Positions 28,259 to 47,731 of a DNA stretch of 64,000 bases are shown piece by piece (within the stretch, counting starts at the first letter, position 1; every line of letters begins with the position of its first letter). Origin of the DNA: Blepharisma stoltei ATCC 30299 (Eukaryota > Protista > Ciliophora); assembly GCA_965603825.1 (NCBI GenBank), contig CBFDEM010000047.1:124001-188000 (forward strand), in the 5' to 3' direction. The notes under the pieces were generated by a model. It made no database searches and was not told the DNA's origin. It worked only from the letters and a program-made list of their open reading frames with translations. Made by a program: the position numbers and the translations under genes.

Positions 28259-30190
28259 ATGTTGCCTTTAATTTTTGCTTTGTTATTTACCCTTTCTCAA
28301 GCAGACCCAGGAATTTGTAAAAGTGCTTTAATATCTGTATACACCAAAACCCACAAAGACGCCACAAAAATGCTTTATTACTCTGGAAGAGATTTTGATG
28401 ATTTAGGAAAATACGATGACTGCAATGACTTAGACTCTGCAAAATATCTTTTAATAAGAGGCAAAGTCCAAGGAAATATAGGAATGATAGGCCTATGTGG
28501 CCCAAAAGAATGTTCTACTTCAGATTACGACGACTTAAAAGGATGACTTGATGTTGCCTTAAATTTGACTTCACGAGGAATTGAGCTGGACACGCTGAAA
28601 TTTTATTTTTCTTATGATTATAATCACGAACCACTTGACGGAGGAGCTATTTTTATGGTAATTTTGTGGTGCTTGTTAATAATCGTTGTCATTTCAGGCA
28701 CATATCTTGAGTACCTGAAAATCCAAGACCCTGAAAAGAAATTTGAAGGGAAATTGGGGCTTTTAATGACTTTTTCAGCCATACACAATTCTTCAAAGCT
28801 ATTTGTCCTTCCTATAGAAAAAGACAATTTACAAATTTTTAACGGAATTAGGGTTTTTGGAATGCTTTATATCATTATTGGGCATTCTTATGTATACCAG
28901 CTTAGTGCAGCAATCACAAATCCGAATCAAGCAATTGATTGGATAACTGATTTTGGGCATAAATTTATATCAATGGCCCAATATCTGGTTGATATTTTTT
29001 TCCTTATGGCTGGGTTTCTGCTTGCATATCTTACAATCGGAGAAATGAACAGAAAAAATGGGAGGATTAACTGGGTTGTGTTTATATCCCACCGCTTCAT
29101 CAGGATGATTCCTGTTTATTGGTTTGCTTTTTTAAACTACCTGCTGCTAGAAAGATATATAGGAGGTGGCCCTCAGTGGCCATCATTTAAACAGCTCACT
29201 ATAACAGGCTGTGACGACTATTGGTGGTCAAATCTTTTATTTTTAAATAATCTTTTGCCTAGTGACGCTTATTGTTGCATGGGCTGGACATGGTACGTAG
29301 CCAATGATGTACAGTTTTATTGCTTTACGCCTATTATTTTGATAATTTATTATAAGAGAAAATACTTCGCATATATTCTCTTATGCCTCCTTATTCTGCT
29401 GAATTTTGTTATAATTGCAGGGCTGTCAGATAGGCATGACTATAATCCTACGATTTTGTATGGGTTAAATGATAAGCATCAATTTTTGAATATTTATGTA
29501 AAACCATATACAAGGATGTGCACTTATATATTAGGGTTAATAATAGGATTTATTTATAGGTCAAATGTGGACTATAGACCTGTGAGCTTGATATCTCCTG
29601 TTACTGATATTGAAAACTCTGAACAATCTGCGTTTGAAAGTCAGCTTTACCCTGATAAGGAGAGGGAGGTTAGTGATAATTCAAACTTAGATTGGGTCAC
29701 AAACTTAGAAGTTATGTCTGTAAGGTGGATTCATAATTGATATATAAGGTATTCAGCATATGCTCTAGGAGCTGGATTAATGTTTATGATAAATTTCCTT
29801 CCTTATCAGCTTGATGACCATGGCTTGGATTATTGGACACAAAATGGAAAAACCACTTTTTTGGTATTCGAGCATTTTACATTTGCTGTGGGATTCAGTT
29901 TGATTTTGATTCCTATGCTTTTTGGGAAAGGCAGGGTATTAAATTATATTCTAAGCTTTAAATATCTAGTTCCGCTGGCCAGAATTAGCTTTTCAGTTTA
30001 CATTATCCACCCTATTTTTATTTATTTAGTTGCTTTGTCAAGATATCAAGCCTTTTACTTGCAAGATTGGGAATTGCTTTATAATGCAATTGCGACGATT
30101 TTTCTATCGTTTATTGTAGGCTTTATTTTATCTATGACTTTGGAAAGTCCTATTTTATCATTAGAAAGGAAACTTCTTAGGAAGAAATAA
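28259..30190 (+). CDS. NRF-6/OACYL-like membrane acyltransferase (Acyl_transf_3), two UGA-Trp
   Basis: Signal peptide, DLGKYDDC NRF domain, NGIRV...IIGH, VDIFFLMAGFL, HRFIR, WTWYVANDVQFY, ISFSVYIIH; TGA at 28544 and 29738. Confidence 0.92.
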
Positions 30191-33117: not shown

Positions 33118-33675
33118 TTATAGTAAATAATTAAAAAAAGTTACCAGACATAAATATATTTCAATAACAGTCCCTAATATAAAAAGGAAGCCAAACGCCC
33201 AAGCTCCATAAATTATTCCTAAAATACTTTGCAAAATAATATAAATGCTTCATACATGCATAAAGATCATTAGCAGCTGAAAGAGTTTTTTATTATCTGC
33301 TCCTATACAGTTCGAAAGCATAGAGCAATGATGATGGAATTCTCTTACACATCGGTGGCATTGCACACAATGTATAGTTGTGTCATCTTTGTTCATTTTG
33401 CAGGTTTCGCAATAGTTATATGTGAACCCTTTTCCAGAAAATCCTATTTTTTGTTTCAGTAAAGGCTTAAAAGCTAAATCCAAGTAATACCCAGGGTCTG
33501 ATGTGAAAAAGCATAACGAGAAACAAATGCAGAGAAATGATAGCATAAGATGAAAATTATTAACAATTTCAGGGTAAAACCCACTTGCTAATCTATTGCT
33601 GTAAAATGATGTTCCTATTATGATGAGTAAAGTAGTAGCCAAATTTCCGGGGTTAGGGCAGCTGTGTCGTTCCAT
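33118..33675 (-). CDS. DHHC-type palmitoyltransferase-like protein with variant HHHC motif (one UGA-Trp)
   Basis: SDPG, CETC...HCVQCHRCVREFHHHCSMLSNCIG.DN...F; reads through TGA 33250-33252 to TAA 33118-33120. Confidence 0.8.
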
Positions 33676-34173: not shown

Positions 34174-37044
34174 TTATTGTTTATTAAAGATATGCTCTAC
34201 ACGCTTAAAAGAGTTGCAAGACTCGCATTTTCTCATTTCTTTGCAGTATTTGATAAGGCTTTTCCATTTAGGATTTCTTGACAAGCAAGCTTCATTTCCA
34301 ATGGCGTACATTCCATACTTCGCTCTGCTGATAGCTACATTCATTCTCCTCTCATCTTTGAGGAATCCAATTGTTTTTCCAGATCTAACAGCACTGAAAA
34401 TGACGACATCTACTTCTCTTCCTTGGAAACCATCCACAGAACTTACTTCACAATTTTTTTTCCAAGAATCTCCATATCTTTTGGATAATAATTTTTCAAT
34501 GTGATCCACTTGTCCTTTATATGGAGAAATTATTCCAATATGAGCATCACTTCTACCTATTCTCTTTTTAAGCACTCCATAGAGATTCAGCGCGAATTGT
34601 GCTTCAGGGTCATTGAAGTAGCTCATGGAGCCGTTTTTAGTATTTTCTTTAGATGTGCTAATATTGAAAAAGAATAGCCCTTCAGGATATACCCAATTTG
34701 GTATTGGACGATTATCTATACTTTCTCCCGTACATATTTGATTATTGTAAAATGTTTTGCTGGTAAAGTCACTGATTTCTTTCATCATTCTATATTGCTC
34801 ACTCAATAGCACAGGCTTAACATTACATTCTGTCATCCTTTCAAAAAAGGATCTATCATATTTATTTTTTTTGGATTTTTCTGAAAAAGTTGTAGCTGGG
34901 AGTTGTTTAGGATCTCCAATTAATATAACCGATTTAGGGTCATATTGAAATGGTATTAAAGTGCTAACCTCCAAACTTTGGCAGGCTTCATCTATAATTA
35001 GATAGTCAATTGATTTAACATTTTGCAAAACTGGAAAAGAGCCAGCTCCACTTAAAGTGCAAAATATGACATCGGAATTTTTAATAATATCTTTTTTGCA
35101 TTTATTCTTTTTTCCAAGTAATGTAAATCTTTTCTTTTTCAATTCTGCTAATTTAGGATAAAGTTCTCTTGTGGTGCTGTAGGAATTATAGCTACCTTCT
35201 TTTTTCAGATCTTCTATTTGTTTTTCTAGTTTTTCAATATTTTTAGTTATTTCTTCTATCAGTTTTGAATCATTTTCTTTAATTCTACCAAATAATAAAT
35301 ACAAATCTCAGATTTTTTTGAGCATGAGTTTGGAGAAAAAATCATTTGAACTATAGAATAAATTCATCATTTTGAATAAAACATTTAGCATCATACTTTT
35401 ATACCATCGAAAATAAAATTAACAGCAGAAAATCTTATTAATCTTTATAAAAAAATTTATTCCTCTAACCTAATAACTAAAAAGATTCATTTATTGATAT
35501 AAGAAAATAAGCAAATTTTCAAGTTTTACACTCAATCTTATTGAATGCACAGTCATTTCTATTTCTTCAGCAGTTTTTTCTTCTTCTTCATCAACACCAA
35601 GCTCATGCTTTTGCTTTTTTTCTCCAATCCTCAGTAAAGAAATATCATTTCTTTTATCTCCATATATATCAAAAATTCCTTTTCTTAATACAGTTGATGC
35701 AATTTCGTCAACTGCTGCATTGCTTTGAGCACAAACTAAGATCTTGCTTTTTGGGTTAATTGCAAAGAGTCCTGATAAAATCCCAACGACTGTAGTTGTT
35801 TTTCCAGTACCCGGAGGCCCTTGAATTAGAGATATTTTTCCATCAGATTGTATTGAATTTTTAATTGCTTCAACCTGAGATTTATTATAATTTTTTTGAC
35901 GTATTGTTTGCATGAATATTGGAGGTATGCATTTTTCTCTTGCTGGCGGACATACTTTAGGGTTAAGAATTTGACTTCCCAATGATAAATATTCAATATC
36001 GCCTATAACATCATACTCTCTCTTTAAGGGTGTAATGTTGCCTATAGAAGTTACTATATATTTTCTTGAAGTTTTAAATGATTTTTTACGTCTTGGATCT
36101 AGTGAAATCGTGATTTTATTGTTTTTGCCTTTATTTATCAATCCTAATGTTCAATTAATGTTTCTTATTTGAAGCTCTTTATAGCTTTGAGGCACCGGAT
36201 TTTGGTTAGAGATAATAAGCACAATATCATCATTTCGGATTTCACTTTCAAATTCTGCTTCATCTGAGTCTCTATCTCTATCAGATATAGATGCATATCT
36301 TTTTTCAACGCTAAGATTCAAACAATAACTGTTTGACAGAAAAGCTTCTCCTAAAGCTTGCTCTAATATCGCATCTAATTCAATATAAAAAGCTTGTTCA
36401 AAGTAACGTTTGTATGCAAACTCATTTTGAAATGAGCTTGGGATTTTTAATTGATTCTTTTTGGGGTTTAAAGGGCTGTATGAAAGAATAAAAGTTTCAA
36501 AGTCTGAAAATTCTACATCTGAGTCTGAAGAGGAGTCAGAAAAATCACTAGAATCTTTTCTTTGGCTAGATTGTTGTTGATAGGTTCTATTTTGGGTATT
36601 GTTATACAAATTTTTCTTTGGAAGATCTAAATTTCATCCAGGCTTGAACTGAGACGGACTTGAATAGGAATATCCGTTTTCTTCTCTATCATAGCTGTCT
36701 CCATCTAATCAATATTGATTGAATCCTCTGTTCTGATACATATTTCCTGCAAACTCCTTATTTTGGGCTTGATATTTGCAGGCTGATGATTGAGGAGATG
36801 GAAGCACCATTGGTGCAACATTTTTAACTTCAGTGTTTAAATTTCTATAAGATGGGCTATAACTAGTAGGTATAGTGCTAAAATTATTTGTAGATTTGCA
36901 TAATCCTTTCCCTGGAGTAGCAGAAAGAGAGGCTCCTCCTAGCTTGCAGTCTGAATTTTGAGATATTTTCTCTTGATGCTGCAGGCTAATAGTTTCCTTT
37001 TCTTTAAGCTCTTCAGAGTCACAGGTTGATCATATGGATCCCAT
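34174..37044 (-). CDS. Sen1/Upf1-like SF1B helicase copy 1, interrupted by a ~222-nt AT-rich insertion
   Basis: Starts MGSI(W)S at 37044; several UGA-Trp; GPPGTGKT, DEACQ, GDPKQLP, QYRM, DGFQGRE, RMNVAISRAK; both halves are in the same frame across the insert. Confidence 0.8.
35288..35509. mobile_element. candidate IES / insertion inside helicase copy 1
   Basis: AT-rich, contains stop codons, absent from the three paralogues. Excision of 222 nt between TA dinucleotides (35508-35509 and 35286-35287) leaving one TA restores KLENLLRIKEND. Exact ends are ambiguous. Confidence 0.45.
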
Positions 37045-37089
37045 TATTTATTGCTACATTAATCTCAATTTGTTGTTAAATCTGCATAT

Positions 37090-37124
37090 TTCGGGAATAT
37101 ATGGCATTATTTTAATTTCGGGAA
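37090..37124 (-). promoter_or_regulatory. two copies of the TTCGGGAA upstream motif (helicase copy 1)
   Basis: TTCGGGAA at 37090-37097 and 37117-37124, 46 and 73 nt upstream of ATG 37044; the first matches the offset seen in the paralogues. Confidence 0.55.
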
Positions 37125-37339
37125 AATATGGAAATTTAAAGTTAAAGATTTAAAATAAAAATTTTAGGCTATTATTTAGGCATAATTATTGTTTAAAAAA
37201 TGCAATAAGCATAAATCAACGATTAATATATATTATAGATATGCTTCATCTAGAATTTTCTGCCAGGCTGGTATTTCTCAATCTGTTTGGAATGAAGGTT
37301 TCTTATAAATTATAAAAAATAAAATAAAATAAAGAATGA

Positions 37340-39967
37340 TTATTGCTTATTAAAGATATGCTTACCACCTTCAAAAGTTTTACAAGACTGATACTTTCTA
37401 ATTTCTTTGCAATAATCAATAAGGCTTCTCCATTTGAGATTACTTGACAAGCAAGCTTCATTTCCAATGGCGTACATTCCATACTTCGCTCTGCTGATAG
37501 CTACATTCATTCTCCTCTCATCTTTAAGGAATCCAATTGTTTTTCCAGATCTAACAGCACTAAAAATGACGACGTCTACTTCTCTTCCTTGGAAACCATC
37601 CACAGAACTTACTTCACAATTTTTTTTCCAAGAATCTCCATATCTTTTAAATAATAATTTTTCAATATGCCGAACTTGTCCTTGATAAGGAGAAATTATT
37701 CCTATATGAGCGTCATTGTTACCAATTCTCTTTCTAAGCAATGCATAGGCACTTAATACAAACTGAGCTTCAGAGTCGTTAAAATAGCTCATAGAGTCAT
37801 TTGCCATTACTTCTTTGGACTTGGTAAGATTAAAAAAGAATAGCCCTTCAGGATATACCCATTTTGGTATAAGACGAGATTTTATACTATTCCCGGTCTG
37901 GATTTGATTTTTATAAAATGTTTTGCTGGTAAAATCGCTGATTTCTTTTACCATTCTGTACTGTTCTCTTAATAGTGAAGGGTTAATGCTGCAAGACATC
38001 ATCCTTTCAAAAAAGGATCTATCATATTTGTTTATTTTTGATTTTTCTGAAAAAGTTGTGGCTGGGAGCTGCTTGGGATCTCCAATTAGTATGACTGACT
38101 TAGGATTATATTGAAATGGGATAAGAGTACTAAGCTCTAAACTTTGACAGGCTTCATCGATAATTAGATAGTCAACTGAGTTGATATTTTGCGTGACTAT
38201 ATAAGAGCCAGCTCCGCTTAAGGTACAAAAAATAACATCTGCAGCCCTGATTGTTTCAGCTTTGTATAGCTCTTTTTTATAAAAATACTTGGATTTTAGT
38301 TTTTTCAACTCTTTAAGATCGTCAGAAAGTAAATTGAATTCAGTTTCAAGATCTTCCATAGCATCATATTTTGCTCCTTTTTGCAGCTTTTCCATTTGTT
38401 TTTCTATTTTTTCCAGTTTTCCAATTATTTTTGTTATGTCTAATGAAGGGTCATAGAGACCTTCTTCATTTAGCTTTTTTTCAACAATCACGTTCAATTT
38501 AATAGAACTTATGCTCATTTCTATTTCGCTTGCAGTTTTCACTTCTTCTTCAACACCCAACTCATGCTTTTGTTTCTTTTCTCCAATCCTCAACAAAGAA
38601 ATATCATCTCTTTTATTCCCATTTATATCAAAAATTCCTTTTTTCAGTGTTGTTGAGGCAATTTCGTTGACTGCTGCATTACTTTGAGCGCAAATTAATA
38701 CCTTGGCATTTTCATTAATTGCATAGAGCCCTGATAAAATACCTACAACGGTTGTTGTTTTTCCAGTTCCAGGAGGCCCTTGAATTAGAGATATTTTTCC
38801 ATCAGAATTAATTGAATTTTTTATTGCTTTTACTTGAGACTTATTGTATTTATTTTGGATTGCTTTTGTAAATTCATTGGGGATAGTTTTCTCGCTACTT
38901 GGCTTGTATGTTTGAGGACAAAGAATTTGTTCTCTAAATGAAAACTGATCAATCTTATCAAGCACTGAAAATTCTCTCTTTAAAGATGTAACGTTCCCAA
39001 TGACTGTTATCATGTATTTTCTGTTATATTTGAGATCAGTTCCTCTATCTGCATTAAGAAAAATCTCAATTATTTCATGAGTTTTCTTTTTATTCCTCTC
39101 TATTCTTTTATTTATCAATCCTAAAGTCCAACAGACATTATAGTCAGTCAACTCTTCGAAATTTATAGGATATCTATTTTGTTCAGGTATGATTAAAACA
39201 ATATCATTTACGCACACCTCATTCTCAAATTTAGCTTCATTTGAGCCTTTAATTGATAGTGTGGCTAAATTCTCTTGCATTTTCAAGCTTAGAAGATAGT
39301 TATTTGACAGAAAAGCTTCGTCTAAGGCTTGCCTTAGAATTGCGTCAAATTCTATATAAAATGCAGGCTCGAAATGAGATCTGTAAACAGATGTGTTTTC
39401 GAATGTTTTTGGTATTGCTGTTGGCTTAATCTTTGGTAGAAGAGGGCTGTAGGTCAGAATAAATGTGATAAATTCTGAGTAGACTGTTGTAAAATCTGGA
39501 GAGATTTCAGGAAAATCAGTAGCAGGTATAATGCTTTGAGAAAAATCTGTCCTTTTCTTCGCCTTTTTTCATTTTTTTTGATTTTTTCTTTGATTGGATT
39601 TTTTTGGAGCGTTGCTGCAATTGGCTAGAGCGGCAACACTATTAAAACTACTTTCAGATTTATATTGAATAGGAGTAATGATGCTTAAATCCAAGGTATC
39701 TGAACTAGCAGTTGAGCTTTCGTCAAAATTTATGCAATGATGAGGTCTAGCTGTCCCAAACTTGTTTGGATCATTATTTAAGATGTGAGATTCATTAGTG
39801 CTTGGTTTTCTAGAGTTGAACAAGTTTTCATCTGAGTTGTCTAAGTCAGAGAATCTTTCTAGTTTACCATCTGATCGCTGAATTTCTATCTCTGGACGAA
39901 GCAAACTAGATGCTTTCTCTGAACTCGGCTTCTCAGAATCTAGTGATTTTAATAAAGACCCCATCAT
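37340..39967 (-). CDS. Sen1/Upf1-like SF1B helicase copy 2, intact (~875 aa)
   Basis: (M)MGSLLKS start; reads through TGA 39569-39571 into the 648-aa ORF; all SF1B motifs present. Confidence 0.92.
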
Positions 39968-40011
39968 ATTGTTTATAATGGAATGATTTTTTTGACTTAA
40001 AAATATGACAA

Positions 40012-40019
40012 TTCGGGAA
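40012..40019 (-). promoter_or_regulatory. TTCGGGAA upstream motif (helicase copy 2)
   Basis: 45-48 nt upstream of the ATG. Confidence 0.55.
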
Positions 40020-40147
40020 TAATTGCCATTATCAAGCTAACGGCATATAGTAAAGCGAGTAAAGAAAAATTGACTTTTATGAATAAATGAGGTAAAGTAA
40101 ATAGACGCATTCAGGAAGATACACAAGATGATTTATATAAAGTAAGA

Positions 40148-43100
40148 TTAATTATACTTTGGCTTATTGAAAATATATTTCAAGTCATCAAAAGAGCGGC
40201 AAGGCTCATATTTGTTTAATTCCTTGGAATAGTCAATCAAACTTTTCCATTTAGGGTTATTCGATAAACGAGCTTCATTACCAATAGCATAAATTCCATA
40301 TTTCGCTCTGCTTATAGCTACGTTCATTCTTCTCTCGTCTCTGAGAAACCCAATTTTTTCGGATCTGACAGTGCTAAGAATAACTAAATCGACTTCTCTT
40401 CCCTGGAAACCGTCAACTGAGCTGACTTCACATTTTTTTTTTCATGAATTCCCAAACCTATAGTATAATAACTCCTCAATATGTTGAACTTGTCCTTTAT
40501 AAGGAGAAATAATCCCTATATGAGCATTCGTATTATAAGTTCTCTTTCTGAGAAATGCATAAATATTAATAACAAAATTTGCCTCAGATGCATTATAATA
40601 GCTTAAAGAGTTTTCTGCTTTCATTTCTTCAGAAGTCTCAAGATTAAAAAACAATAAACCAACAGGGTATATCCAATTTGGTATTTTTCTATAAATTATA
40701 CTTTTTGGGCATTGAATTTGGTTGTTATAAAAGGTCTTGCTAGTGAAATCACTAATTTCTCTTATCATCCTATATTGCTGGCATAGGAGAACTGGCCTTA
40801 TGTTACATTCCATCATTCTTTCAAAAAAAGATCTATCATAATTATTATTTTTTGAAATTTCTGAAAATGTTGTTGCTGGCAGCTGTTTGGGATCTCCAAT
40901 TAATATAACAGATTTCGGATTATATTGAAAAGGTATCAATGTGCTAAGTTCGAGACTTTGGCAAGCTTCATCAATGATTAAATAATCAATTGAGTCAATG
41001 TTTTGCACAACAGCCATTGAGCCTGATCCGCTTAAAGTGCAAAATATGACATTTTTAGATTTTAAGATCTCTATTTTAAACTTTGTTTTCATAGAAAAAT
41101 AGGTTGATCTTTGTATTTTTAATTTTTTTAATATATCCGAGAGAATAATAAATTCATTTTGAATTTCTTCCATTGCTTTATATTCTCCTCTTTTTTGCAG
41201 TTCTTCAAGTCTTTTTTCTAATTTCTCAAGTTTTTCAATTAATTTTTTTATTTCAGAGGTTGGATCGCTAAGACCTTCAGCCCTAAGTTTTTCTTCTACC
41301 AAAACATTTAGTTTGATAGAATGTATACTCACTTCTATTTCCTTAGCAGTTTTCACTTCTTCCCCTACGCCTAGTTCATGCTTTTGCCTCTTTTCTCCAA
41401 TCCTTAATAAAGAAATATCATCTCTTGTATTTCCATCTAAACCAAAAATTCCTTTTCTCAATACTGTTGAAGCAATTTCATCAACAGCTGCATTACTTTG
41501 TGCGCAAACTAACACCCTGATATTTTTATTAGCTGCATAGAGTCCAGATAAAATTCCCACGACAGTATTTGTTTTTCCAGTTCCAGGAGGCCCTTGAATT
41601 AAAGATATTTTGTTTTCTGAATTCATCGAACTAGCAATCGCTTTTATTTGAGATTTGTTATATTTGTTATTTAAAAGAATTTCCTTAAGCTTGAAAATGA
41701 TGGCATCTTCAGCTAAATCGCATTGTTGTGGGCAAAGGATTTGGTCTTTCAGAGAATAGCATTTAAGCTTTTCCAGCACCGAAAATTCTCTCTTTAAAGA
41801 TGTGATATTTCCAATAATTGCGACGATGTATTTTTTTGAGTGTTTAAATTGACTTTCTCTACATGTATTAAGTAAAATATTGAATTCATTTTTTTTATCC
41901 TGATTTATCAATCCTAGTATCCACGGAATATTTTCTTTTTTAATCTCTTGGAAATTTGTAGGAAAATTATTTTGACTGGGGATTATAATAACAATGTCAT
42001 TTATTTGGATTTCATTTTCAAATTTCATTTCACTAGAGCCAATAGGGGATAAAGCTGCTCAGTTTGATTCCATTTTAAGATTTAATCGATATTTATAGGA
42101 TAGAAAAGCTTCTTCTAATGCTTGATTTAAAATAGCACCCATTTCAATATAAAATGCATGCTCAAAATGAGAACTGTAGATAGATAAGTCCTGGAATATA
42201 TTGGGGAGAAGAATTGTCATGGATCTTGGCTGGGGGAGGCTATATTAAAGGATAAATGAGATAAATTCTGAATAAGTATTTGATTGGGAGGAATCTGATG
42301 AAGAGTCAGAAAAGTCCTTGCCGGGTTTATAAGACTTTGGGGAATGACATCTACTTTCTCTTTTTATAGAAGATCCTCTTCATCTTCCTCTTCCTCTTCC
42401 TCGTCTTTGATTCGGGCTTGGACTAGATCTCTCTGAACTATAATTGTGAATATTTTGTTTCTTAGCAGCAGCATTTAAATCACTTATAGGTCTATATTGA
42501 ATTGTGTCAGAGCAGACAGAAGACCTACAGCTTGAAATATATGAATTGCTGGAGGAGTCATAATCCGAAGGCGGATAATTCACGGTGAACATAGGTGAGC
42601 TTTTTTCTGGCCATTTATTAGTTGTAGACTTGGTTTCATATTTTTCAGTCAATGTGGAATAATTAGCTTCAACTTTAACTTGCTCAGAATAATGACTAGT
42701 GTACAAATTAGAAGATTGATTAGAAACTTTAGGAGATGGGATTGCAACTGTAGAAGGTTGATTTTGGAAAGAGTTTGCGACTGAATACTGATTTTTAGAT
42801 TGAGTAGTGGAATTTGCAGATTTTAATGAGTCAGTATTAATTGAAAATGTAGGGCTCTTAGCTTGGCTTTGTATAGCTGTAGCTTGATTTTGCAAAGTGT
42901 ATAATTCTTGACGATGATTTCTAGATGAAGTAGCAGGAGCTATAAGATGAAGTGAGCTACTATTCATCGGAGCTTCTGGGATCTTAACTTGATTGAGTGC
43001 AGTTTTAGTAGGCAAAGATTGGGTGTTGGGCACATTAGCAGGGTTTATGCGTCTACATAAGTTTTTATCAATTGGTGATAAAGCGCTACTTGCCAGCTTT

Positions 43101-43309
43101 AGCTGAGTATTTATATCTGAACCTCGATTTCTAGATAAGATAATTTGATCTATAAATTTATGAGGTCGATTCCTCATTAGTAATGCATATGGAGAAAGTC
43201 CTTCTGGTTTGAGATACGGATGCTGACTAATTTTATTTAATCTTTGTGGCGCAGGTTTTTTCTCTACTTGATTCTTATTTTTATTCTCTGATCCCAATCA
43301 ATTTCCCAT
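40148..43309 (-). pseudogene. Sen1/Upf1-like SF1B helicase copy 3 with one in-frame TAA
   Basis: Starts MGN(W)LGS at 43309; single frame of 1054 codons with UGA-Trp; TAA 42245-42247 where paralogues have Ser/Thr (FIL-S-YS). Confidence 0.75.
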
Positions 43310-43738
43310 AGGAAATTCACTTAAATATAAAATTCATTTTTTGGAATAAATATCGATTTAGGAAAATAGACTGCCGCTAATAAGCTATTGGGTAATTTAT
43401 ACTGATATTAGATAATATTATACACTCATACCAACAACCCTGCTAAATTTTGCTTAGAATTTACTCAAATATATATAAACGCAAAATCAATAAACAAATA
43501 ATTAACCTTTCTAGCTCATTCTTTATTTCCTTTTTAATTTTCAAACCTTCAAAGCAAAGCGTTTTAAATAGATTTTATGAAATCTATTCCGATGCTTGAA
43601 CCCTAATGTCTAGGGCTGAATTGTGCAGAAGAGATAGTTAGTTTCATAATGAATTATATGGCTCATTGATGATAATTGAAATTAAAGAAATTCCACATGC
43701 TTATAATTTAAAGGCTATAAGATGCATTAAATTTCAGA

Positions 43739-46521
43739 TTAATAATACTTTGTGTTATTGAAAAACAATGTCACGTCCTTAAAATATCTGCACGACTCGT
43801 ATTTGTTTGACTTTTTACAATACTCAATGAAGCTCTTCCATTTAGGATTACTTGATAAGCAAGCTTCATTCCCAACGGCATATATTCCATATTTTGCTCT
43901 GCTTATAGCTACGTTCATTCTTCTTTCGTCCCTAAGAAACCCAATGCTTTCAGACCTTACAGCACTAAGAATAACTAAATCAACTTCTCTTCCTTGGAAA
44001 CCATCAACTGAACTGATTTCACAATTTTTTTTCCAAGAACTCCCAAAATTTTCATATAATAAATCTTTTATATACTGAACTTGTCCTTTATAAGGAGAAA
44101 TTATCCCTATACGAGCATTTCTATTGCAAATCCTATTCCCCAGTAATGAGTATAGTCTATATACAAAATCTGCTTCAGATTCATTATAGTAGCTCAAAGA
44201 GTCTTCTGCTTTCGTTTCTTCAGATGTTTCAAGATTAAAAAATAACGTTCCAGTAGGGTAAATTCAATCAGGTGTTTTTCGAAGCATAACACTTTGTGAG
44301 CATTGAATTTGGTTTTTGTAGAAAGTTTCACTGATGAAATCGCTAATTTCTTTTGTCATTCTATATTGAACACTTAATACCAGGGGTCTTATATTACATT
44401 TCATCATTCTTTCAAAAAAGGATCTGTCATACTTACTAGTTTTCGAGATATTTGAAAAAGTTGTTGCTGGAAGCTGCTTGGGGTCTCCAATCAATATTAC
44501 TGACCTTGGATTATATTGAAAAGGTATTAGGGCACTAAGTTCTAAGCTTTGGCAAGCTTCATCTACAATCAAATAATCAACTGAATTAATATTTTGCACA
44601 ACGATATTGAGCCTGCCCCACTTAATGTGCAAAAAACAATATCTGCAGCTCTTATTAATTCTGCCATATATATAGTTTTCTTGGAAAAATAAAGTGTTCT
44701 TTTCTCTTTTAAACTCTCTACTTTGCAAGAAAGTTCTTCAATTTTTATTTCGATTTCCACAGTGCCATATTTTGCTCTTTTTTCCACCAACTCTTTATAT
44801 TGTTCTTCTAATTTTTCAAGTTTTTCAATTAATTTTTTAATATTAAAAGTTGGATCGTAGAGGTCTTCTTTATTAAGCTTTTCTTCTACTAAAACATTTA
44901 TTTTAATAGAATTTATGCCCATTTCTATTTCTTTCGAAGTTTTAATATCTTCTTCAACTCCGAGTTCATGCTTTTGTCTTTTTTCTCCAACTCTCAATAA
45001 AGAAATATCGCTTCTTTTATTGCCATCTTCATCCAAAATTCCTTCTTTTAAAACTGTCCATGCAATTTCGTCTACCGCTGCATTACTTTGAGCGCAAATT
45101 AATACCTTTAATTTTCTATTATAAGCATAGAGCCCAGATAAAATCCCTGCCACTGTTCTTGTTTTTCCAGTTCCAGGAGGTCCTTGAATTAAAGCGATTT
45201 TGCCATCAGAATTGATTGAAGTTACAATAGCTTCTAACTGAGACTGATTATATTTATCTTGAATATTTTCTGTAAGTCTACATTTTATTAGCGGTTCATA
45301 CCATTGAGGGCTTAAAATCTGTCTGAGCAGTGAAAAGCGCTTAATCTTATCAAGCACTGACAGTTCTCTCTTTAGCGATGTAATATTTCCGATTATTGCT
45401 GCTATATAAATTTTTGAATTTTTAAACTGAGCTTCTCTGTCTGGGCTGAGTAAAATATTAATTTTGTTTACTTTGTTTTGGTCTATCAACCCTAGAATCC
45501 AAGAAATATTGTTTTCTTTAATTTCTTCGAAATTTCTTGGAAACTTATTTTGATTAGGAATGATAATGATAATATCATTAATTTGGATTTCATTTTCGAA
45601 ATTTAATTCACTAGAGCTTGAAGGTGATAAAGAGGCATGGTTATTCTCTACGTGAAGATTTAAGCGATATTTATTTGAAAGAAAGGCTTCTTCTAAGGCT
45701 TGGTCTAAAATGGCATTTAATTCAGTATAAAATCCATGCCTAAAATAATGGATATAGCTAGGTATATCATTAAATGAGTTTGGAATTATAATGGGTTCGG
45801 ATTTTGGCCTGTAGAGACTGTATGAAAGGATAAATGTAATAAATTCAGAATAAATTTTTGATGGCGCTGATGAATCTGGAGTGGAGCCAGAAATATTGCT
45901 GTTTGGTTTTATGGGCTTTTGAGATTTATTTATGCTTTTGATAGGGAGTTTACTATTTGCTACTGCTTTTCTCACTGGACTATTATTGCTGAGATTTTTG
46001 TAGTTAACAACATTTTTCAAATTGCTTACTGGTTTATATTGTGCAAAGCTATATGAAGCTGAAGAGCTATCGCTAGAAGTGTCCAAAAAGCAGGAGTAGT
46101 CAGAGTCTAAAGGCACATAATCTGGATTATATTTGGTTCATCTATTAGTTTTTGTAGACGGGGCTTCATGTTTTTGAGGTGATGTATGATAAGTAGGAAG
46201 AGCCGGGAATTCAAAGAGATTCATCTGATATTTTGCATCATTTTTAGCGGGATCATAGCTATGCAAATTGGTGCTTCTAGCAGATGGATATGCATATCGA
46301 GCAGAATTTCTAACCTGATTTTGTAAGGTGTTTGGCCTAGATCATAAATTGCTAGATAAATTAGCAGAGTTGGATGGGCTATTTCGCATTGGTGTCACAT
46401 ATGCTGATGAATATTCTGACTCACTATATGAGGGCTGGTTGGATTTATTTAATTTTTCCTGCTCAATTTTCTGTCCTTCTTCATTCCTTTCTGAATCTGC
46501 TGATCCCAATAAGCACCCCAT
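43739..46521 (-). pseudogene. Sen1/Upf1-like SF1B helicase copy 4 with a 1-nt deletion
   Basis: Starts MGCLLGS at 46521; frameshift at ~44607 after CTLSGAGS, after which IVVQNINSVDY continues in another frame; TGA 44264-44266 is W in PDWIYP. Confidence 0.75.
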
Positions 46522-46570: not shown

Positions 46571-46578
46571 TTCGGGAA
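46571..46578 (-). promoter_or_regulatory. TTCGGGAA upstream motif (helicase copy 4)
   Basis: 50 nt upstream of the ATG; context ATTTCGGGAATATATAGCATTA is almost identical to copy 1. Confidence 0.55.
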
Positions 46579-46855: not shown

Positions 46856-47731
46856 TTACAACTTTGTTACTAAAACATCCAGCCTGTTCCATTCAAACTT
46901 CTTAAAAAGTTCAAATTCTGTGTAAGAGAACCCAGCTGTACATGTTTCTTGTTGTGTTCCTCCATCCTTTCCATATGCTACATATTGATACCAGCAATCA
47001 ATAAAGCCAAATCTCCTAGTGTTATATAAATTTTCCCCACACATGATACATTGGTGCTCCCCAATTTCATTCTCATTAACAAGATTAAATTTTCCTAATC
47101 CCTTGCTAATGCATACCGACTGCTTATAAGCAAGGCAATTTTGATTCATACAAATCCCTTCCTGAATTAATCCTGATTTTTTTATCTTCCAAGGACTAGG
47201 AGCACACCCTAAATGCTCACCTTGATAAAGTGCATGCAAAACATGGCCTGATGGAAATTCGCAATTTTCATCAGACCTGAGTTCTAAGTCATCATAAACT
47301 AATTTACAATTGTGATTATTGCAACAGTTTTTTAAGTCTGAAATTGAGTCTTCTAGCTGTGAAATAGTAGACTCATTACATACTGAAATACAAATATTTG
47401 TATGTGTACAACAGTGGATTTTTACGTTTATCAATCTTGTGTTTTTTGCCTTAGGCTCGACATGCACAAAGATTTTTTCACCCTTTTTGATGAAAAGCTC
47501 TGATAAAGGGGTGAAGTCTTTGTGATAGTAAGTTTTTTCTCGGAATTTCAAGTTTATTGAATATCTGTGCCTACAAAATTCTGGCGACATAAATGTTTTT
47601 AATTCCTTGCAGAGAGACTTTATTGTAGTATTAGCTGGAACTTTTTGTATGTGCTTAGGGGTAGGAAAAAAGTGAGGATCGAATACAAAAGTTATGCTTT
47701 TTGTGAGCGAAGAGGCAGAACAGTTTCCCAT
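46856..47731 (-). CDS. protein with Ubl-like domains and a C-terminal Cys-rich (putative Zn-binding) domain
   Basis: Likely start MGNCSAS at 47731; two beta-grasp-like segments (NTTIKSL...TPLSELFIKKG; ESTISQLE...LVYDD), then PW....GL..EG.C.N..C.A....V....G......C.MC. Confidence 0.75.
   Translation of the reverse strand: MGNCSASSLTKSITFVFDPHFFPTPKHIQKVPANTTIKSLCKELKTFMSPEFCRHRYSINLKFREKTYYHKDFTPLSELFIKKGEKIFVHVEPKAKNTRLINVKIHCCTHTNICISVCNESTISQLEDSISDLKNCCNNHNCKLVYDDLELRSDENCEFPSGHVLHALYQGEHLGCAPSPWKIKKSGLIQEGICMNQNCLAYKQSVCISKGLGKFNLVNENEIGEHQCIMCGENLYNTRRFGFIDCWYQYVAYGKDGGTQQETCTAGFSYTEFELFKKFEWNRLDVLVTKL

Follow-up and report, generated by a model that had tools for sequence, protein, structure and literature searches.

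What kind of protein is encoded by four neighboring Met-Gly-initiated helicase genes in the ciliate Blepharisma stoltei, and do all four still encode one? The question concerns positions 34174–46521 of the window, by which we mean the whole 64,000-nt stretch analyzed (C47:124001-188000 of the somatic macronuclear (MAC) genome of strain ATCC 30299; 41.46 Mb, 64 contigs). Read with UGA as Trp, this interval contains four tandem minus-strand superfamily 1B (SF1B) helicase genes, each with Pfam matches to AAA_11 and AAA_12. A sequence-only reading had interpreted them as a family of membrane-tethered RNA surveillance helicases under selection for N-myristoylation. Our analysis instead favors, with a probability of about 0.62, the view that a ciliate Sen1/senataxin-type helicase has expanded in tandem within a restricted lineage and that the resulting genes are now in birth-and-death decay. 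The four tandem genes and their Met-Gly starts, MGSIWS (37044), MGSLLKS (39964), MGNWLGS (43309), and MGCLLGS (46521), are present as that reading had described them, but it had overlooked that three of the genes are broken, by a frameshift (46521), a TAA codon (43309), and an insert (37044). Only the 39964 copy has one continuous frame, the other three being interrupted in the assembly. The copies, named here by the position of their starts, are as follows.

43739–46521, minus strand: helicase copy of the Sen1/SETX type, start MGCLLGS (Cys3), with a frameshift just before Walker B
40148–43309, minus strand: helicase copy, start MGNWLGS, 345-aa N-region with an RG repeat, with an in-frame stop in the brace helix
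37340–39967, minus strand: the only intact helicase copy, 875 aa, first ATG giving MMGSLLKS
34174–37044, minus strand: helicase copy, start MGSIWST (Cys8), interrupted in the prong-coding region

The public annotation of the locus (record CAJZBQ010000047) splits each interrupted copy into two pieces, of 652 and 222 aa (46521), 354 and 690 aa (43309), and 517 and 398 aa (37044). In the intact copy the brace, stalk, barrel, RecA1, prong, and RecA2 elements and every catalytic motif are present. Directly upstream of its MGSLLKS start lies an in-frame ATG at 39967, overlooked before, which gives Met-Met-Gly, as annotated. The interruptions of the other copies are located at the following positions.

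44600–44606, minus strand: 1-nt deletion relative to the three paralogues in the paralogue alignment, outside any homopolymer
42245–42247, minus strand: in-frame TAA inside the brace helix of the 43309 copy, where the paralogues have Ser/Thr
35282–35509, no strand assigned: single-copy AT-rich insert with stop codons, ~228 nt (222–234 nt), 21% GC, in the prong-coding region of the 37044 copy

The base missing near 44605 results in a TAG at 44563–44565, just before Walker B of the 46521 copy. The three lesions are probably real rather than artefacts, because the strain is near-homozygous and was assembled from HiFi reads with 145x coverage (10.1101/2021.12.14.471607) and because the 46521 copy carries an excess of private amino-acid changes after its frameshift (22:13 vs 25:40, p = 0.02, in one of three comparisons). 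Other causes of the breaks were considered and rejected. No GT-AG tiny intron lies near the TAA of the 43309 copy, an intron is excluded for the 46521 lesion, which is a deletion, and none of the breaks coincides with any of the eight internal eliminated sequences (IESs) that the MAC+IES record places inside the helicase genes. TA-bounded excisions of 222, 228, 231, and 234 nt each restore the frame of the 37044 copy, and the protein score does not separate them. The insert is IES-like, yet the somatic assembly contains it and it is absent from the called IESs; its length matches a known IES length peak at 225–231 nt (PMC9942856), and it may represent an IES whose removal has ceased. Compared with nearby sequence as a possible decayed duplicate, it aligned no better than shuffles (p 0.3–0.9). 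Between 46742 and 29966 of the window, the MAC+IES record has fifteen germline inserts of 93–739 nt. Eight fall within the helicase genes, all of them in copies other than 37044; ends of the form CTCCCCC...GGGGGAGTAA are common to four of the fifteen, and long inverted ends occur in one of 231 nt near 29966.

The array had been described as Sen1/Upf1-type, of which the Sen1 part holds and the Upf1 part does not. Ranked against PDB sequences, the array scored highest with Sen1/SETX (1e-68), followed by UPF1 (1e-59), IGHMBP2 (1e-37), and ZNFX1 (1e-25). The structure model of the intact core (pLDDT, the predicted local distance difference test score, of 89) found its top structural matches in SETX/Sen1, with Z values of 34–37. 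From residue 4–6 onward the model aligns to Sen1 1109–1110 in the brace, covering the second brace helix, with the first helix not shown. The brace is the feature that distinguishes Sen1 (PMC5452015). The UPF1 alignment begins only at model residue 25–33, and both UPF1 and IGHMBP2 align from the stalk only. Motifs Q, I, Ia, II, III, IV, V, and VI are intact in the SF1B core. Pfam gave no match to the CH zinc-binding and 1B domains of UPF1, and none to accessory domains of MOV10, UPF1, or ZNFX1 at E ≤ 0.01. Judged by sequence ranking, modeled structure, and brace, the predicted core is of the Sen1/senataxin type, not Upf1 or ZNFX1. With Sen1/SETX (PDB 5MZN, 8FTM, 8RAM) the array shares an SF1B core with brace helix, stalk, barrel, prong, and all catalytic motifs; it differs in having a low-complexity region that starts Met-Gly in place of SEN1_N and in consisting of four tandem copies, three of them broken. 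What it has in common with UPF1, IGHMBP2, ZNFX1, and MOV10/SDE3 is the SF1B fold and its motifs, the first three of these scoring below Sen1 in sequence and structure. The genome of B. stoltei also has separate UPF1 (C21), UPF1-like, and IGHMBP2 genes. In a second UPF1-like gene (C30:592600-595200) Walker B reads DDAT rather than DEAT, and its product is possibly catalytically impaired.

The phylogeny that had been proposed as a check, with UPF1 and MOV10 among the comparators, was carried out without a MOV10 reference sequence. In two trees, the first a quick version, the array forms one clade (support 100/100) within a ciliate Sen1-like group, apart from the genome's own UPF1 genes, and this ciliate clade groups with fungal Sen1 against UPF1, the deep branches being weakly supported. 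The intact copy has the shortest or joint-shortest terminal branch in both trees. Protein searches over three length ranges and 50% representatives returned nothing above ~45% identity outside the window, although close kin could hide in clusters. A second heterotrich assembly with UGA as Trp (SRR24908292) does contain orthologues of the B. stoltei copies on C15 and C5/C53. The array therefore looks lineage-restricted. The nearest relatives of the array (39–45% identity) are three tandem Sen1-like genes at C15:541000-552300. This cluster resembles the array in its tandem arrangement and in having one broken copy, the first, and differs in its TPR/J-domain-like front end, which is conserved in the second species, and in lacking Met-Gly starts. 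An HPD motif is found in the third C15 copy and in its SRR24908292 orthologue; Pfam gave nothing at E ≤ 0.01 for residues 1–300 of one such protein. Other heterotrich Sen1-like paralogues (Stentor SteCoe_30073 and SteCoe_14461; B. stoltei C5 and C53) fall in the same clade at 33–45% identity. They share with the array a QYRM motif without His and a disordered N-region in place of SEN1_N, and are distinguished from it by a CAPSN-type motif Ia in all of them and a Met-Gly start in none. Single Sen1-like copies occur on C1, C5, C20, and C53, and decayed pseudogenes with many stops and frameshifts lie at C39:332000-333400, C20:254200-255000, and C45:64250-64570, all three closest by eye to the C1/C20 copies. 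In total, about eleven Sen1-like loci of B. stoltei are near-complete and three are decayed, and at least three kinds of front end occur among them. The motifs CAQSNAAV and QYRMx(K/R)EISDF, previously singled out as non-canonical, do occur in all four array copies but are not special to them, since QYRM lacks His in 26/26 ciliate-type relatives showing the motif and Gln occupies motif Ia in 9/50 other Sen1-like matches.

The N-regions of the array copies are S/P/N-rich, 161–345 aa long, and had been considered impossible to align. This is not the case for the first ~11 residues, which are homologous in all four copies (Met-Gly-(S/N/C)-hydrophobic-hydrophobic, then Ser, often Asp-Ser-Glu), nor for the linkers of the 46521 and 43309 copies, the only pair to align well (score of 140 vs 58±10 in shuffles); the remainder is barely alignable. 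No donor of the N-region was found elsewhere in the genome, no Pfam or Atlas match was obtained for it, and an Rfam search gave no match. The four predicted proteins come from one founder, in which a Met-Gly-x-hydrophobic-hydrophobic peptide and a disordered S/P/N-rich linker replaced the earlier N-terminus. Gly2 is present in 4/4 starts, encoded by both GGG and GGA, at dS (synonymous divergence) near 1. By comparison, Met-Gly begins 4/58 other open reading frames in the sampled DNA and 3/21 in the window (7–14%), 0/20 full-length ciliate-type relatives, and 1/50 further full-length matches, and the conservation of the predicted start exceeds chance. In 13/20 of these ciliate-type relatives a V/I/L-D-L-T/I/L motif lies within the first 40 residues, which we take to resemble a SUMO-interacting motif (SIM). 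The Met-Gly start of the array replaces this V/I-D-L-T start, and the SIM-like beginning of the relatives points to a nuclear ancestor.

Three of the four array starts are preceded by a TTCCCGAA motif at the following positions.

46571–46578, minus strand: TTCCCGAA motif beginning 57 nt before the ATG at 46521
40012–40019, minus strand: TTCCCGAA motif beginning 52 nt before the ATG at 39967
37090–37124, minus strand: two TTCCCGAA motifs beginning 53 and 80 nt before the ATG at 37044

The 11-mer form occurs only 117 times in the genome. The presence of so rare a motif 52–80 nt ahead of three starts is evidence that genes truly begin in these ATG regions and suggests that the array genes are regulated in common. 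The motif also occurs reversed at C15:548784, 35 nt upstream of one C15 paralogue, and clusters of it lie at C2:711732-712126, C36:1026030-1026834, and C52:116930-117261.

The start peptide is a candidate acylation signal. An N-myristoyltransferase (NMT) gene is present in the genome, and Gly2 and the hydrophobic residues at positions 4 and 5 are retained beside a diverging linker, as is typical of acylated N-termini. The excess of Met-Gly over chance, the conserved hydrophobic residues, and the NMT gene make it plausible that acylation was under selection in the founder. The myristoylation pattern Met-Gly-x-x-x-Ser/Thr (PMC8982324) is matched by 1/4 starts, and a looser PROSITE-type rule that accepts a small residue at position 6 by 3/4. 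Possible second membrane signals, Cys3 (46521) and Cys8 (37044), are both in broken copies; no start has an N-terminal polybasic patch, and acidic residues follow in two copies. In each broken copy Gly comes directly after the predicted initiator Met; use of the first ATG in the intact copy would give Met-Met-Gly. A Met-Met start would not be trimmed by methionine aminopeptidase to expose Gly. With this extra ATG and Lys6, the intact copy is the poorest fit to a myristoylation signal of the four, and it contains a basic cluster resembling a nuclear localization signal at about residues 126–139. No orthologue of the array with which to compare Gly2 was found in databases, and a literature search turned up no report of a myristoylated Upf1-like helicase. 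The proposal of selection for N-myristoylation thus survives in part: the chances are about even that the start peptide was an N-myristoylation signal in the founder, this signal has probably been weakened or lost in the surviving copy, and an acylated copy still at work today would have about one chance in five.

Two findings weigh against a decaying Sen1-type expansion. All catalytic motifs survive in the broken copies too (four copies compared), from which the lesions would be recent or partly artefactual, and neither SEN1_N (PF12726) nor SEN1_barrel was matched by Pfam. SEN1_N is also absent from the ciliate relatives, and the array is accordingly better described as Sen1-type paralogues than as full-length orthologues. 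Pairwise ratios of nonsynonymous to synonymous change (dN/dS) for the cores of the array copies are 0.12–0.3 at dS 0.6–1.7, calculated, like the trees, on unjoined gene pieces. These values show that the predicted cores have been under purifying selection for most of their history and, with the motifs intact in all copies, indicate lesions that are recent relative to the duplications.

The strongest competitor, somewhat improbable, ascribes the Met-Gly start only to common descent together with constraint, either around the start codon or on how the N-terminus is processed (acetylation or a Gly/N-degron), the proteins being plain nuclear Sen1 paralogues without lipid. It overlaps with the favored decaying expansion, from which only the role given to the start peptide separates it. 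In its favor, the starts stem from one founder and so do not count as four independent cases, their homology reaches residue 11 and continues upstream of the genes, the intact copy has the basic cluster and tolerates both Lys6 and an ATG ahead of its start, and the ancestor appears to have been nuclear; it fits less well that residues 2, 4, and 5 stay Gly and hydrophobic beside a mostly barely alignable linker. A living family of N-myristoylated, membrane-associated Sen1-type helicases is unlikely. It would require breaks that are strain-specific, assembly errors, or repaired (most somatic copies having lost the insert as an IES), and an intact copy started at its second ATG by leaky scanning. 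The invariant Gly2 with two Gly codons, the hydrophobic residues at positions 4 and 5, the low Met-Gly baseline, the NMT gene, the looser pattern, the Cys residues of two copies, and the insert length of 228 nt at a known IES peak speak for such a family; the three independent lesions in a HiFi assembly, the relaxed selection after the 46521 frameshift, the single strict pattern match, the acidic rather than polybasic residues, and the lack of an orthologue or literature precedent speak against it. A version in which a Sen1-type lineage swapped its SUMO-binding-like N-terminus for a myristoylation signal, and one or more copies are still expressed, acylated, and kept at membranes until required, is likewise doubtful. 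A membrane-tethered helicase family is possible, but the surveillance part of the earlier proposal is unsupported: no antiviral or small-RNA evidence was found, and a Sen1/senataxin-type core with a brace disfavors a role like that of MOV10 or ZNFX1. Antiviral or small-RNA surveillance helicases resembling MOV10/SDE3/ZNFX1 at membranes are very improbable; tandem duplication, turnover, and varied N-termini (Met-Gly, J-domain-like, SIM-like) may recall defense-gene evolution, yet the core is Sen1-type by sequence, tree, and structure, the accessory domains have no Pfam match, and dN/dS is below 1 in every well-aligned pair, with no sign of positive selection.

On the favored reading of a Sen1-type expansion in decay, the intact protein would, like Sen1, load on single-stranded RNA, move 5′–3′ with ATP, and separate RNA:DNA hybrids or clear transcripts of polymerase and protein. 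It would most likely be nuclear and restricted to a stage under the shared TTCCCGAA element; a stage-specific role is probable by analogy with the development-specific SEN1 paralogue of Oxytricha (PMC5312943). In the founder, a single myristate would not have acted as a fixed anchor but would have bound or sequestered the protein at membranes weakly and reversibly; in two copies, palmitate at Cys3 or Cys8 could have come in addition. The array is flanked by a ubiquitin-like gene on one side and by DHHC/WD40 genes on the other. The DHHC palmitoyltransferase gene directly downstream of the array (33118–33675, minus strand) is probably there by chance adjacency. The upstream neighbor (46856–47731, minus strand) also has a Met-Gly start (MGNCSAS), with weak ubiquitin-like domains and a Cys-rich C terminus, and no link between it and the helicase N-termini was seen.

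Sen1/senataxin is usually a single-copy nuclear enzyme. The about eleven near-complete loci and their different front ends in B. stoltei suggest that one motor has been retargeted several times in a cell whose somatic genome is rebuilt. If an array copy is indeed lipid-modified, it would be the first lipid-modified Sen1-type RNA helicase and a new way to localize such a helicase. For now, the array is a largely broken set of predicted Sen1-type paralogues restricted to one species, in which it chiefly illustrates the birth and death of genes.

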